The position numbers were made by a program, and so were the translations under genes. The notes below the pieces were generated by a model. That model was given only the letters and a program-made list of their open reading frames with translations. It was not told the origin of the DNA and did no database searches. A stretch of 64,000 nucleotides of DNA, taken from assembly GCF_006345805.1 (NCBI RefSeq), contig NC_043011.1, positions 65,918,464-65,982,463 of the forward strand, given 5' to 3'. This document shows positions 3,223 through 47,345 of this stretch, one piece after another. Source of the DNA: Octopus sinensis (taxonomy: Eukaryota). Position 1 is the stretch's first letter, and each line of letters begins with the position of its first letter.

Positions 3223-3307
3223 AGGATACTATATCTTCATTATATGCTTTAGTCCTAAAGTTAACCATGAGTGTTATGATGTCTTAGATAAAAGTCACTC
3301 TTGCTCG
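3223..3307 (+). CDS. G1 exon 3 (GYYIFIICFSPKVNHECYDVLDKSHSCS), six-Cys family
   Basis: ttttttttctag acceptor, gtaagt donor; 85 nt, phase 2 to 0; same size and Cys positions as 24191-24275 and 43175-43259. Confidence 0.85.
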
Positions 3308-4060
3308 GTAAGTTATTTCTTATTACTGTTATATATTGTAAATAATAATCTTTAATTTCTCTCTGATACTTTGCTCTGGCTTAAAGGTGAATTTTCTCAA
3401 TAATGAACGCTTTTCTCAATTCATGACAATACAGTTCTTTGTAATTTTTTGACCCTACACATAATCTTATAGTGATTCTAGAGTTGAATTAATATCCAGG
3501 CAATTGTTTGGGCAACAGGGTGCTGTTTGACTCTGTTTAAAAGCTAAATTTAATGCACGAATTTATTTGAAGCCACAGATGTGTTTCTGAATTCAAATTC
3601 ATTAAGAAATATTTTACTGTTGATGAAGTCTTCATAGATTATCAATAATAGAGGCATGGATGTTCACATTTTTCATAGACATGCCATGGTATCACTCGTA
3701 AAGTGACTTCACATGGCAAAATTATTTGACTGTTACATCGGAGATTTGGGAACGATTATAATGCTGCACATCCGGCAACATAATAATTACCATTATATTT
3801 CTTATAGAAAACAGCAAATTTGTAAAAAAAAAGCTTTTTCATATCATCAGATTTAATCCACCAAAACACGAAAAACATGTGAAGAGTAATTGTTTATTCC
3901 TTATAATCATTAATCACACAGAGTGCATTAACGACATTCTGTATAACAATGTTACATTGATAGAATTCATATCTACTTCTATGAAATGTAGTTGTAAAAA
4001 TACATTGAATGACTTTGTGCGGTTCTTTTCAATTTCATGATGCTTGTCTTTTCTTTTCAG

Positions 4061-4111
4061 CCTCGAAATAAGCAAAATATGTTACGTACTACCAAAGTTC
4101 CTACTCCTTCG
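4061..4111 (+). CDS. G1 exon 4, linker (PRNKQNMLRTTKVPTPS)
   Basis: cttttcttttcag acceptor, gtaatt donor, 51 nt phase 0 to 0, open frame. Confidence 0.6.
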
Positions 4112-5093
4112 GTAATTCCTGCTTTACCCACGATACGTTTTCCTTTTATCCTCAGTATTTGTTTATTCAATAATTCCCGGTAACAAAATTATAACTTTTA
4201 GAATAAACACTTATTGTTATGCAGATTCATTATATATTTTGCAATAACTGATTTGCGGTAAGATAACATTGAAAATATGTAGATCATTTGATTATTATAA
4301 ATATTATATATCCTTTACAAATCTTTGATTTGTAGTGATGATACTGAATCGCCATCGGAAATGTGATATAACTGCGATAATAATACTTTAGTATTGCGAA
4401 TATACTTATGAATATATCAGCGTCCTTAAATATTAATGAGAAATCACTTTATCTGCAGCTACCTGCTCTGCTTTATAGGGTTAGTAGAAACTCAATCTGT
4501 CTAACTCAATTTATCACAATATTTGGTAAATGTGTTTCTCTTTATAACCAGTAAGATTCGACAGGGCGTGAGAAAATGACTGAAATTATATCCCGCTACA
4601 GAAGGATTCCATCTCTAGTCTCATATCAATCCTACCAACCAAGGTCCGCTCTGAAGTGTCACCGCTGTCCCACTGTTAACCTTTGAAACCGTTGTTTAGA
4701 TTCTGTCCCTGGCTCCCCTATATGCTGTAATAATTTTCCTGCGTAATCACAATAGAAATGCTGAAAAGAAATGATATATATACAAGGGAAATCATTCCAT
4801 TTTTAACCTCATTATTAGTTGCAATATTGATGTTTGATAGTATTGTTTTGCCTATTCTCTTCACAGTCGTCTTTCCAACCGTCTGCAGCTATTACTACAA
4901 TGGCGTCTACATTATTATTGCACGACTACATTTAGAAAATGTTGGAATCTACCTGCATCATGTTGGCAATTGTCTTGATAATTTAGTCTAATATGTCTGA
5001 AATATGTTAATAAACTTGAGAAGACTATACCCAATGATTATACGTTTACATTTCTTTTAATTTTTTTAAACCTCGATAATCCTAGATTTTCAG

Positions 5094-5153
5094 TTGGAAT
5101 ATTTGAAAATACTGCTTTTGATACCAATTTGTATGTTTATCATGCATTGTTAG
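5094..5153 (+). CDS. G1 terminal exon, hydrophobic tail (LEYLKILLLIPICMFIMHC*)
   Basis: T-rich tract and ttttcag acceptor, phase 0; 60 nt to the stop, as in the G2 terminal exon; GPI-signal-like. Confidence 0.55.
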   Translation: MEYLKILLLIPICMFIMHC

Positions 5154-43625: not shown

Positions 43626-44154
43626 TACAAATAATAAGAGAGAGTCCACCATGTGGTCACTATAACGCTAGAAATAGATCCGCAAAGGGACTCCGCCACT
43701 AAATAATTGTTCTCAAGAATTAATTCAACACGCCAAAAATGTAAGCGAGCAGGACAAATGAAAAATGACGACAGAACAGATTAACTCCATACAATTGTTT
43801 CATCGTTAATAGATTATGTAGTTTTACTTACATAAGTATTTTCGAATCATCAGTGAAGTATATCTTTGTTGGACTTCGTTAGATTTTGGAGTTCGGTTCA
43901 GCAAATTATATTTTCGATATACTTCACTGATGATTCGAAAATACTTATGTAAGTAAGACTACATAATCTATTAACGATGAAACAATTGTATGGAGTTAAT
44001 CTATTCTTTCGTCATTTTTCCTTTGTCCTGCTGGCTTACATTTTTGGCGTGTTGAATTAATTCTTGAGAACAATCTTTTAGTGGCGGATTCCCTTTGCGG
44101 ATCTATTTCTAGCGTTAGAGTGACCACATGGTGGACTCTCTCTTATTATTTGTA
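43626..44154. repeat. Fold-back inverted repeat (arms about 239 bp, spacer about 51 bp) between (TA)n tracts
   Basis: 43626-43864 is the near-exact reverse complement of 43916-44154. Confidence 0.92.
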
Positions 44155-44785
44155 TATATATATATATATATATATATATATATATATATATATATATATA
44201 TATATATATATATACATATATATATATATATGCAAGATAACAAGGCGAAGGTAATGCGATATTTCTAGGAATTTAGAAAGCGGAAGGTAGTATTACTGCT
44301 GTGTTCATCTTTCTACGCATTCATATTTATTCAACAGCAAACATGTATGCAGCGCATACAATTGCTGCGCCGACAGGGTACAGTACAGATGCATACTGCC
44401 TTTAACTAATTATTGCGCATACTAATGCACAGGGAAGGCATAATCCTTAGCTTTCCTACCAAAATGCTTAGCGACGTTTCGTCCGTATTTATGCTCTGAG
44501 AGTTCAAATTCTTCCCAGCTCGATTTTGCCTTTTATCCTTTCGGGTTCGGTAAAATAACTAGCAATAATATACTGATGTCGATTTATCCCTTCCCAAACT
44601 GCCGACCCAGTTCCAAAATTTTAAACTTGCAATTAACGTACATACTCCCAACGTTAATTATAATTGTATGACGCGCCATGTGTGATGGACTTTATATTGA
44701 CTTTATTTCGATATAGTTTTGATCATACATTCAGCCATATTTATTGCACTCTCTAACTTTGAAGATATGTCCTATTTCTTTTCAG

Positions 44786-44812
44786 ACCGGAATGAAGTCT
44801 TCCATACATGAG
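44786..44812 (+). CDS. G3 exon 4, linker (TGMKSSIHE)
   Basis: ctatttcttttcag acceptor, gtacgt donor, 27 nt phase 0 to 0. Confidence 0.7.
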
Positions 44813-47297
44813 GTACGTGATTTCATTGTAATGACCGATTGAATAATATATATTCACTCTTGTGTTTTACACTTCCATTTTGCTACAGTCTTTTAATTGT
44901 ATAAATGATTGTAAACATGTGTACGACGCTATTTTGCATTATATAACGACTATCATCGCAACAAGATTGAATTGATAATTTTAAATAAGTATTGAGTTGA
45001 TAACGTTGACTAATTTTAGCCTACATGGATATTTATAATCCTATATGTTCCGTAGATATGGAAGAATATTATGACGCTATCATGATACTACAGCAAAAAT
45101 ATCTAAGAGTTTCGATATGACGATATTGCAAACGCGTTGAATTTGAAAGACATACATCAACATAATATTGAGAATAATTAAATATCAGAGGATATTTCCC
45201 TCGCACCGAGACTTACTAAAGGATTGTGTCTGTTTTATCTCTTGAAGGTTAAGAAAGACTATCAGAATTTTTGCTACACACCTCTCAGCTTGACAGGCTT
45301 GTCGCATAATGGGCTATATTCTTCACAGAAACAAGATTTAAGAGTGTTACTAATAAACCATGCCATATTCAACAGGTGTGATATGTTGTGGGTCCTCTCT
45401 GGTTGCTTTCCTCAAACTTCATCACCAACTGTACAACTGATCCTTCTTGTATTCCTCGATTGTCGCTGAAGAGGCAAAGGTATAAATAGCAAAATCGTTG
45501 CGTAATTCATATCGGACTACTTTCAATATTTAAATAAACACGCACGCACACACACACACACACACACATATATATGTGTGTGTGTGTGTGTATGTAGACA
45601 GAGAGAGAGAGAGAGAGAGAGGTGGAGTATGAAAGGTTTTGGTGTCAGGAAGGCCCAAAAGTGTCAGGTAGTGCTGAGTAAGTGCTATGGACAGAGTATA
45701 GTTAAGCTCCAGGTTCTATAATCATAAGAATGAGGCCCCCAATGTAAGTCGTTTATTAGCATACATCTATATAGAGAGAGAAATTAACAGAAAGAAATTT
45801 AAAAAGTCCAAGTCTGTGAATAGTTTTCAGAACATTTATAAAGAGGTCTACACATTCTCTTTATTATGAAAGCTAAAACCGTGTGATGAAGCAGATATCG
45901 TTGTATTTTACGATGTTCGTTATTTTTTTGCGTTTTGTTTTTTCGTTAAATATACGCATGCATTACTTTTCTTATTCTAACTCGTGTCTATTGTCCCGAA
46001 ATTTTTCGTCGTACATCTGTGTTCATTTCCGTCTGCGTATTTGCTCTTGTTCTGCCTCGTCCATTTTCTCATATGATGTGTATCCTTATTTCTGCAAACA
46101 TTTGCGTATGTATTAGTCTGCATGTGTACATGGGTGTGTGTTTGTGTGTGTGTGTGTCACCGTTCTTAGTATCACATTGAAACTCCTCTCAGCGCCGTCC
46201 CTTCCACCGTTGCTCCTACTCCTGCTCTTGACTCCGACTTTTTGTACCGTTCCTGTATACCTCTGTGTTTGTCTGTTCGCGAACGCTTGTTCAGCGTCTT
46301 AGTTTTTGTTGTTTTTGTTCTTGTTGCCGCTATTGCTGTTGTCGTTGTTGGTCGAGTTGTTGATATTGTTACGGCCGTTTTGTGAAGCTATTATAGACGT
46401 GTATGCGTGTGTATGTGCGTTCGCTTCCTATGTTGGTTGCAAGTGTGCCTTTTATACTCTATTGTGTGTGTATTACACTGTATCTGATTTTTCTCTCTTT
46501 TTTCTTTAGTCATCATTTTGTGTAGTGTGACTGTGGACGCTATTGTTTCATTCATGTTCTCTGTCGAGGTCCGGTCTGCCTATCGCAATGTGTGTAGCCT
46601 ATGAGATCTAAGCTTCATGTCGCTTTCATACGTTGATAACAACTTCACCTCTGTGCTGTTAACCAAGGCTGTATGTTCTGCTTGAGCATATTGATAGAGC
46701 ATGAAACGAGATTTTCTCTTCAACGAATTTCCGCCAGAGTTACCCATACGCTCCACTATGCTGCGTGCTGTTTCCTCAAGAGCGCGTGTTTATTTGGCAA
46801 AAAGCGGAGAAAAAATTATTATCATTATACATATACATATATATATATATGTATACGTATATAAACATATGTACCTATATACATACACACACACAAACGT
46901 ACACACACACACATACACGTATATATATATGGAGAGACAGAAAGGGGTTTTGGTGGAAGGAAACTACAAGAATCCCGCCGTATATATATGTGTGTGAGTG
47001 CGTGTCCGTGTATGAGTGTGTCGGTCTGTCTGCCTGTGTGTCTATTTTTGTCTCCGCCATGGTTTGAGAACTGTTGCTGATGTGTTTATGTCACGGCAAC
47101 CTAGCGGTTCCGCAAAAGAATACCCTAGAATATGTGCTAGGCTTACAAATAATGGCTCCTGGATGGGATCGTTTTCTTTGACTAAAGTCCCTTAAGGCAG
47201 TGCTCCAGCATGACCGCAGTACAATAACTGAAACATGTAAATGGATAAAAGTATATTTACTTCTTTATGAAGTATGATGTTCCAATTCTCTTTTCAG

Positions 47298-47345
47298 ATA
47301 ACGCTTAATTCAATGTTCCTTATTACATTTTTGGTTACTTTGTAA
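47298..47345 (+). CDS. G3 terminal exon (ITLNSMFLITFLVTL*)
   Basis: ttctcttttcag acceptor; uncharged hydrophobic tail; homologous to the G2 last exon. Confidence 0.78.
   Translation: MTLNSMFLITFLVTL

Follow-up and report, generated by a model that had tools for sequence, protein, structure and literature searches.

Proteins of the Ly6/uPAR family, such as CD59, Lynx1 and Drosophila Sleepless/Boudin, are made as precursors of about 100 aa in which a disulfide-rich domain lies between a signal peptide and a GPI-type tail, and their genes, which have short exons and typically three coding ones, lie in tandem clusters and diverge rapidly. Plant LTPG/nsLTP and fungal CFEM proteins, members of multigene and lineage-restricted families, join a helical, disulfide-locked domain to a Ser/Thr-rich linker and a GPI signal. 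Aplysia attractin, the Euplotes pheromones and insect OBPs are secreted proteins whose small helical domain carries six cysteines, and Euplotes also produces membrane-bound pheromone isoforms via alternative splicing. CHCH, or twin Cx9C, proteins (Mia40, Cox17) fold within the intermembrane space of mitochondria and have no signal peptide.

Here, we describe a family of small six-cysteine proteins encoded in a 64,000-nt stretch of Octopus sinensis DNA (hereafter the window), which shares about 97.5% identity with Octopus vulgaris chromosome OX597831.1. The window contains two intact five-exon genes (G2 and G3) and two single-exon fragments (G0 and G1), arranged in tandem on a single strand as proposed in a first-pass annotation made from the nucleotide sequence.

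Genes and fragments in the window

G2 and G3 are real, complete genes with phases 1/2/0/0, and their spliced products of 107 and 99 aa, respectively, are identical to the peptides proposed earlier; all the exon coordinates and lengths then quoted, and the phases, agree with the sequence. In G2, on the + strand, exon 1 (13335..13374, 40 nt) encodes the start of the putative signal peptide (MNNASLFIFLLLV), exon 2 (22019..22118, 100 nt) its predicted end and Cys1-Cys3, exon 3 (24191..24275, 85 nt) an FLxCF motif and Cys4-Cys6, exon 4 (25379..25417, 39 nt) a Ser-rich linker (VQAPKKSSSNQDK) that is a candidate GPI omega region, and exon 5 (25859..25918, 60 nt) a hydrophobic tail (ITFAAVTLNSFVIILLKHK) and the stop codon. 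The same map of signal, Cys1-3, Cys4-6, linker and hydrophobic tail is followed by G3, also on the + strand, with exon 1 at 40168..40207 (40 nt, MTMLSLYILFLLL), exon 2 at 42610..42709 (100 nt, Cys1-Cys3), exon 3 at 43175..43259 (85 nt, Cys4-Cys6), exon 4 at 44786..44812 (27 nt, linker TGMKSSIHE) and exon 5 at 47298..47345 (48 nt, tail ITLNSMFLITFLVTL and stop); an AATAAA polyadenylation signal at 47454 lies about 110 nt or less past the stop. The two products match each other by BLASTP with E=3e-8 and about 32-33% identity. The donor of G2 exon 1 is GCAAGT rather than a GT site, and the first intron of this gene is thus of the GC-AG type. O. vulgaris is identical over the 200 nt around this exon, including the donor, and the other splice sites of both models are consensus.

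G0 is a lone exon-3 homologue (GYYIFIICFSPKVNHECYDVLDKSHSCS; 3223..3307, + strand, 85 nt) with the length, phase and AG/GTAAGT borders of G3 exon 3; its acceptor reads ttttttctag. It matches G3 exon 3 in a tblastn search within the window (E=1.5e-4), and the exon-3 HMM gives a full-length but weak alignment (iE 0.3-1). Its exons 1-2 were presumably lost or lie upstream of the window, and the segments at 4061-4111 and 4867-4935 are tentative, speculative candidates for its tail exons.

G1 is a lone exon-1 homologue (MSKHSLFILILIF; 9335..9374, + strand, 40 nt, phase 1, donor GTAATT), and its exon is also present in O. vulgaris. A scan of both strands of the window for 40-nt ATG...GT first exons, with microsatellite artefacts set aside, was survived by 9335, the first exon of G3 and one minus-strand match (35424), while the first exon of G2 was missed because its donor is GC; a chance origin of the G1 piece is unlikely. 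A 99-nt second exon had been attributed to a pseudogene, but neither exon-2/3 HMMs nor Cys-pattern scans detected an exon 2 or 3 between 9375 and 13334, and the sole 99-nt AG..GT candidate, at 9654, was rejected as TA-microsatellite sequence. The four paralogous loci first proposed therefore amount to two complete genes and two single-exon fragments. G1 could be what remains of a paralogue that has decayed, or it could be spliced in frame to G2 exon 2 as an alternative to that gene's own first exon. A possible decayed tail exon (VVFTAFVVRLLIYD; 12763..12804, + strand), without a nearby stop codon and occurring in O. vulgaris too, weakly matches the exon-5 HMM (iE 0.003-0.016).

Relatives in Octopus vulgaris and Octopus bimaculoides

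In O. vulgaris (L001) both ORFs and 10/10 exons are intact. The exons differ from those of O. sinensis at 7 of 323 positions in G2 (introns 1.5%) and at 1 of 300 in G3 (introns 1.2%); in neither gene is the difference between exons and introns significant and, since exon divergence is not demonstrably lower than that of introns, the comparison does not prove purifying selection. Of the seven codons altered in G2, six carry a non-synonymous change. In the databases searched, G2 is present only within an O. vulgaris "hypothetical predicted protein" (P0001), a chimera of a transposon ORF and pieces of two family genes, and the borders of G2 exon 4 are identical in the O. vulgaris annotation; no annotation of G3 was found in any of these databases.

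In an exhaustive phmmer search of 1.8 billion proteins, G2 matched P0002, P0003, P0004 and P0006 with E values from 1e-8 to 2e-4; these four are RefSeq proteins of O. bimaculoides, 102-108 aa long and named "uncharacterized protein LOC128249831/931/940/946". G2 and G3 belong to this unnamed family by similarity, by cysteine spacing and by exon layout, as the O. bimaculoides paralogues have five exons, phases 1/2/0/0 and the same six invariant cysteines. The independent models of P0002 (exons of 37/94/82/36/60 nt) and P0003 (40/100/82/39/60 nt) agree with G2 and G3 in exon count and phases; a called 104-aa gene (40/103/82/36/54 nt) has the same five-exon layout, and its model is not independent because it was rebuilt with the family layout as a guide. 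On O. bimaculoides CM046618.1, same-strand arrays of family members occupy 50.18-50.26 Mb and the opposite strand bears more members near 50.00-50.02 Mb; annotation is lacking for several of these genes. The family was thus rightly called hidden insofar as its multi-exon genes are invisible to ORF tracks, but four O. bimaculoides members were already public as RefSeq models.

P0006, which is isoform X2 of LOC128249931, has a short polar end in place of the hydrophobic tail and is a possible soluble form. Exact-sequence look-ups of P0002, P0003 and P0008 returned the genome assembly only and no transcript-derived contig. In libraries of billions of proteins no homologue was detected outside Octopus, in agreement with the lineage restriction first suggested, and no paper describing the family was found.

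Protein framework and known disulfide-rich families

Across seven members the cysteine spacing is C-x7-C-x13/14-C-x8-C-x7/8-C-x9-C, and the six cysteines together with the F and L of the F-L-x-C motif are invariant in 7/7, while the residue following Cys6 varies (P, N, S, G, I, V, R). The association of six cysteines with a signal-peptide-like first exon and a hydrophobic last exon, already noticed in the first reading, is found in G2, in G3 and in their relatives. AlphaFold2, run on a shallow alignment of five sequences, predicts a four-helix core (residues 22-31, 33-41, 46-59 and 62-71) with pLDDT of about 80-89, the linker and tail being of low confidence.

The resemblance to Ly6/uPAR proteins in precursor size, signal peptide, disulfide-rich domain and GPI-type tail, the last with a compatible composition, and in the short exons, clustering and rapid divergence of the genes makes them a working analogy for a tethered mini-domain that could modulate surface receptors. 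However, Ly6/uPAR domains have 8-10 cysteines, a CxxC-type N-terminal start, a CCxxxxCN motif and a beta-sheet three-finger fold, whereas the octopus core has six cysteines without adjacent CC, its confident part is all-helical in AlphaFold2, Foldseek gave no three-finger match and the genes have five coding exons. Insect OBPs, in turn, have a C2-x3-C3 and a C5-x8-C6 spacing and a six-helix domain of about 120 aa with no hydrophobic tail, about twice the size of the octopus proteins, in which the spacing is 7/13-14/8/7-8/9 and the domain spans about 55 aa. Pfam hmmscan at E<=10 with G2, G3 and the four O. bimaculoides members returned no UPAR_LY6, Toxin_TOLIP or PBP_GOBP match; the family is therefore neither Ly6/uPAR nor OBP, two assignments that the first-pass annotation had also been unable to make.

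A likeness to CHCH proteins lies in cysteines about 8-9 residues apart on successive helices (C-x8-C, a short loop, C-x9-C), a geometry that would fit a disulfide-stapled antiparallel hairpin. The only sequence echoes score at chance level (Pfam CX9C, E=0.19 in 1/5 members; Mia40 Cx9C helices, E=1, 13 bits) and the octopus proteins, unlike CHCH proteins, have spacings of 8 and 9 rather than 9 and 9, a single exact Cx9C, an extra C-x7-C pair and a signal peptide; membership was rejected and the likeness is in form only. LTPG/nsLTP and CFEM proteins differ in having eight cysteines and other motifs (CC and CxC in nsLTP) and belong to another kingdom; no homology is implied, and no Pfam match of nsLTP/CFEM type was obtained. 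Cysteine spacings also differ in attractin, Euplotes pheromones and OBPs, to which no similarity was detected by sequence or Foldseek. Overall, searches of Pfam, PDB sequences and Foldseek gave no match to a characterised family.

Proposed membrane anchorage and significance of the family

The C-terminal uncharged run measures 15-19 residues, with 0-3 residues beyond it, has a mean Kyte-Doolittle value of 1.4-2.3 and contains Ser, Thr and Asn; it is encoded by a separate hydrophobic last exon in 7/7 complete members of the comparison as well as in an eighth gene, a called one in L003, and SS or SSS precedes it in 6/7 members. Such a C-terminus, placed behind a Ser-rich linker, agrees with a GPI signal, and a short transmembrane anchor could have a tail of the same length.

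The best explanation, to which we assign a probability of about 0.6, is a genuine Octopus-restricted orphan family that duplicates in tandem and diverges fast, so that paralogues are just 23-43% identical, and that encodes a helical domain with a signal peptide and a GPI tether. A signal peptide for the ER, later cleaved, would come from exon 1 and the start of exon 2, and the mature domain, about 55 residues with four short helices and three disulfides formed by the six cysteines, from exons 2 and 3; exon 4 would add a short polar Ser-rich linker and exon 5 the hydrophobic C-terminus of 15-19 residues. The ER GPI transamidase would cut off the tail at a small residue of the SS/SSS linker, leaving a helical domain of about 60 residues on the outer leaflet of the plasma membrane, where it may be a membrane-bound ligand for, or modulator of, other surface proteins; soluble forms may arise through alternative last exons. 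The first-pass annotation had proposed a putative role in recognition, signalling or defence.

It is unlikely that these are type I (bitopic) membrane proteins without a lipid anchor, in which the hydrophobic segment would remain as a membrane-spanning helix followed by 0-3 cytosolic residues. Several members do have basic or polar flanks around the run (K...KHK in G2; MHN, MHT or MQK ends elsewhere), and a semi-conserved short polar end is unexpected if the tail were a discarded GPI signal; yet for a helix spanning the plasma membrane the run would be short and its hydrophobicity only moderate, G3 terminates right at it, and a cluster of small residues 5-10 residues upstream, in 6/7 members, is GPI-signal-like. 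Slightly less probable is a family of mainly soluble secreted peptides (pheromone, antimicrobial or toxin-like), whose tail would be a pro-region or missing from the main isoform. P0006 does lack the tail, and secreted effector and pheromone families typically diverge fast in tandem arrays, but the hydrophobic last exon is kept throughout the members listed above and is not preceded by any conserved dibasic processing site.

It appears improbable that, in this species, G2 and/or G3 have fallen silent and are slowly decaying with their frames still open, functional members, if any, being elsewhere. In favour of this, only fragments are left of the neighbouring G0 and G1, G2 combines a GC donor with an intron-like rate of evolution and mostly non-synonymous changes, and the O. 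vulgaris annotation recovered neither gene. Against this, all ten exons, all splice sites and the six cysteines are intact in two genomes that are about 1.2-1.5% diverged, a polyadenylation signal closely follows the G3 stop, and G2 and G3 both retain the full framework at about 33% identity, for which long-term constraint after duplication is needed. Beyond the GPI-tethered orphan family that we favour, we regard as a long shot a cephalopod-invented fold, a CHCH-like stapled hairpin exported with a GPI anchor, that would modulate sensory or neuronal receptors (e.g., the expanded nicotinic-receptor-like chemotactile receptors) convergently with the Ly6/Lynx prototoxins, its tandem diversification tracking that of the receptors.

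It is well known that octopus genomes contain lineage-specific gene expansions linked to neural and sensory novelty. The present family, without known domains and largely missed by gene predictors (absent or fused in the O. vulgaris annotation, present only in part in that of O. bimaculoides), is a concrete case of small-exon coding content still hidden in these genomes, and the public O. vulgaris model P0001 can now be corrected as a transposon ORF fused to pieces of two family genes. If not expressed or functional, it would be one more orphan family; if its members are expressed in a specific tissue, whether as modulators tethered to the cell surface or as secreted signals, they would become candidates for cell-cell or chemical communication specific to octopuses, and their fold could be a new small disulfide-rich one.

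The six-cysteine cluster in the window

Two complete five-exon genes of a six-cysteine protein family, G2 and G3, lie on the + strand of the Octopus sinensis window; the family is real and the gene models of the first-pass annotation are base-exact. The exons of G2 (13335-13374, 22019-22118, 24191-24275, 25379-25417 and 25859-25918; 40, 100, 85, 39 and 60 nt) and those of G3 (40168-40207, 42610-42709, 43175-43259, 44786-44812 and 47298-47345; 40, 100, 85, 27 and 48 nt) join into exactly the proposed peptides of 107 and 99 aa, respectively, and in both genes the phases are 1/2/0/0, as had been claimed for the family. 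The quoted exons are flanked by AG and GT at all eight coordinates, with one exception: consensus GT donors hold elsewhere and fail at G2 exon 1, where GCAAGT (13375-13380) opens a GC-AG intron, GT being found in every other family intron examined. The paralogy of G2 and G3 was recovered by BLASTP (E=3e-8, 32% identity across 81 residues), and nucleotide searches of the paralogous exons against each other gave no matches, with an output swamped by TA repeats. Downstream of the G3 stop codon there is a canonical AATAAA at ~110 nt, and the G2 stop codon is followed by ATTAAA at ~100 nt and by AATAAA at ~1000 nt.

Four paralogous loci had been proposed, two of which are G2 and G3, whereas the other two are only fragments. 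Against G3, a lone exon-3 homologue at 3223-3307 (G0) scores E=1.5e-4 in tblastn and is credible as a third member; it has the length (85 nt) and phase of the family, and its borders are a GTAAGT donor and an acceptor with a strong polypyrimidine tract. G1, a lone exon-1 homologue (9335-9374), can hardly be a chance occurrence: when both strands were scanned for hydrophobic 40-nt ATG...GT openings, the only results besides (TG)n/(TA)n artefacts were 9335, G3 exon 1 and a minus-strand site at 35424, G2 exon 1 being missed only because its donor is GC. Exon 2 or 3 partners for G0 and G1 were found neither by regular expressions, nor by splice-bounded ORF scans, nor by exon HMMs, including stop-tolerant translation. 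The 99-nt exon 2 earlier attributed to the pseudogene is unsupported, the sole 99-nt candidate, at 9654, being microsatellite sequence. Since 9375-13334 holds no exon 2 or 3 relic and just a weak one resembling the tail exon (12763, iE 0.003-0.016), the cluster within the window is made of two intact genes and two fragments. Speculative exons 4 and 5 of G0, not significant, can be drawn at 4061-4111 and 4867-4935 (+), encoding PRNKQNMLRTTKVPTPS and then SSFQPSAAITTMASTLLLHDYI followed by a stop; each comes after a good polypyrimidine acceptor, and a faint likeness to the family tail (TLLMH) is seen in the second.

The window as a whole has 36% G+C, and TA/CA microsatellites abound in it alongside ORFs of retroelements; scans for Rfam families and tRNAs were empty, and no host genes besides the six-cysteine family were seen. 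A 3.7-kb retroelement copy at 30513-34237 carries an intact 987-aa ORF (31060-34023, +) with the Pfam domains RVT_1 and zf-RVT; 37538-38803 holds another copy, older and fragmented. The intact element has no counterpart in the collinear O. vulgaris locus (L001), which passes directly from 30513 to 34237; either it was inserted recently or the other genome lost it by deletion. An (AAT)n-flanked element of ~570 bp (39118-39835), single-copy in the window and placed 330 bp ahead of the G3 start codon, shows 91% identity to an intronic stretch within the O. bimaculoides family cluster (L003 1071-1798), a value far exceeding any other non-coding similarity between the two species. A SINE-like mobile element is the probable identity; neither a long ORF nor an Rfam or tRNA match was found in it. 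Further along are a GIY-YIG ORF typical of Penelope-like elements (51954-52484, +), a LINE 3′ part in two copies (54800-55420 and 62144-63627, –), and a G+C-rich block at 58000-62000 (up to 53% GC, GC skew +0.58) with a reverse-transcriptase ORF at 58850-60226 (–).

Conservation and annotation in O. vulgaris and O. bimaculoides

The O. vulgaris locus (chromosome OX597831.1, GCA_951406725.2, 18.17-18.21 Mb) is collinear with window positions 9180-53727 at ~97-98% identity, and in it the G2 and G3 ORFs, each of their exons and the flanking splice sites are all intact; around G2 exon 1, 200 nt of flank are identical, the GCAAGT donor included. Substitutions in the introns of G2 and G3 amount to 1.2-1.5%, and the changes in exons (7 of 323 sites in G2, 1 of 300 in G3) do not differ significantly from this divergence, which is so low that the comparison has little power to detect selection either way. 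Six of the seven codon changes in G2 are non-synonymous, and all fall in exons 1-2.

In public protein data the two genes are poorly represented in this species. A word-indexed protein search of a 5.8-billion-protein collection returned no candidate for a G3 counterpart, and G3 is therefore unannotated throughout that collection; G2 is present only through P0001, a “Hypothetical predicted protein” of 160 aa. Mapped exon by exon (L001 10001-31383), P0001 is a chimeric model. Its first piece is the O. vulgaris orthologue of a retroelement-associated ORF, without Pfam domain, found at 19401-19946 (+) of the window within the 8.6-kb first intron of G2, and the rest comes from the two family genes, G2 contributing exon 4 and most of exon 5, and G3 the initial 32 nt of exon 2 together with exon 4 in a wrong frame. 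P0001 is clearly wrong as a protein; it independently shares four acceptors and one donor with the first-pass models.

An exhaustive HMMER scan with G2 as query against 1.84 billion representative proteins matched four O. bimaculoides proteins of 102-108 aa (P0002, P0003, P0004 and P0006; E 1e-8 to 2e-4), plus a single chimeric O. vulgaris model and a repeat protein that is a spurious match. The four are RefSeq XP_052830548, XP_052830333, XP_052830537 and XP_052830516, titled “uncharacterized protein LOC128249946/249831/249940/249931” and all located on chromosome CM046618.1, so that the family is already partly in RefSeq as “uncharacterized.” When mapped to their loci, P0002 (37/94/82/36/60 nt) and P0003 (40/100/82/39/60 nt) both have five exons with phases 1/2/0/0, and an unusual exon 4 donor, GTACGT/GTGCGT, recurs across the mapped O. 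bimaculoides genes and G2/G3. A neighbouring called gene of 104 aa, rebuilt with the family layout as a guide, fits that layout with exons of 40/103/82/36/54 nt. Exact-sequence look-ups of P0002, P0003 and P0008 matched on the genome assembly only, and in DNA comparisons of O. bimaculoides with the window repeats align and nothing else.

The O. bimaculoides genes form same-strand tandem arrays at 50.18-50.26 Mb, with LOC128249931 on the opposite strand at ~50.01 Mb. Around the latter, exon HMMs pointed to extra uncalled members (L004 2130-4428, 17238 and 22726-23396; CM046618.1 ~50.00-50.02 Mb), one of which has exon 1 MMKFYLFIFLLLV at L004:2130 and exons 2 and 3 near 3949 and 4344, respectively; L004 also holds two more exon-1 copies, MKITAFILLLLI, and a G3-like exon 2, SECEVIARISCP, interrupted by an assembly gap (Ns). 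With the called arrays and these uncalled members, the family numbers at least ten loci in O. bimaculoides and is generally under-detected by gene callers.

Three independent lines argue that G2 and G3 are real genes, namely the intact ORFs in O. vulgaris, the homologues in O. bimaculoides and the matching five-exon layout. Chance ORFs are ruled out by cross-species homologues of identical architecture. A stronger argument for function than the exon-intron comparison is the retention of the full cysteine framework, splice sites and phases by all paralogues, although they have drifted to ~30% identity.

Protein architecture and comparison with known families

Identity among the seven complete members is 23-43%, and all of them have six invariant cysteines, with spacing 7 / 13-14 / 8 / 7-8 / 9, and an invariant F-L-x-C motif before Cys4. 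As read from the sequences, the proteins open with a hydrophobic stretch of classic signal-sequence type, in which small residues occupy –3/–1, a few positions upstream of Cys1. Single-sequence AlphaFold2 was useless for G2 (pLDDT 52); with a five-sequence alignment the core (residues 21-75) was confidently modeled (pLDDT ~80-89), linker and tail remaining low, as helices 22-31, 33-41, 46-59 and 62-71. In this model, Cys3 and Cys4 are placed on helix 3 and Cys5 and Cys6 on or after helix 4, around a tight turn, which suggests an antiparallel hairpin stapled by C3-C6 and C4-C5 disulfides, with an additional putative C1-C2 bridge. The C-terminus carries an uncharged run of 15-19 residues followed by at most three residues and preceded by 5-10 residues, in six of the seven members, by an SS/SSS cluster; this tail anatomy is that expected of a GPI-attachment signal, and anchoring is predicted from it. 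Linker and tail are encoded by a separate exon each, and in the RefSeq isoform P0006 a short polar end takes the place of the tail, a swap that would yield a soluble form.

Lineage-specific small cysteine-rich families are common. Pfam searches at E<=10 with any member gave only three chance-level matches, one of them CX9C (E=0.19, in one member); profile searches of PDB sequences gave chance matches only, the best being the Cx9C helices of Mia40 (E=1), and Foldseek against PDB and BFVD found none below E=1, with a full-length query model whose signal and tail helices may blunt the search. CHCH proteins, to which the CX9C and Mia40 matches would point, resemble the family only in how the last four cysteines are spaced, and at such chance-level values membership is not demonstrable. 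The Ly6/uPAR family is rejected on the wrong cysteine count, the lack of its motif and a fold predicted to be helical; the likeness to Ly6 proteins is one of logic only, with rapidly diverging, tandemly clustered genes of short exons that encode a very small disulfide-rich domain on a GPI tether, here putative. Insect OBPs are excluded as a family by the absence of Pfam, PDB or Foldseek matches. Literature searches by LOC, XP and UniProt identifiers and by topic returned no paper naming these loci or describing such a family, nor is it mentioned in a cephalopod venom preprint of 2026. Within the protein collections searched, the family thus appears to be an Octopus-restricted orphan, with no detectable relatives or known domain.

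The best reading is a putative mini-domain of the cell surface, helical, held by three disulfides and tethered through GPI, accompanied by soluble variants; any part in recognition or in modulating receptors is speculative. This is a clean and testable new family of moderate interest, so far with no tie to a biological role, and its finding doubles as a correction of public annotation.
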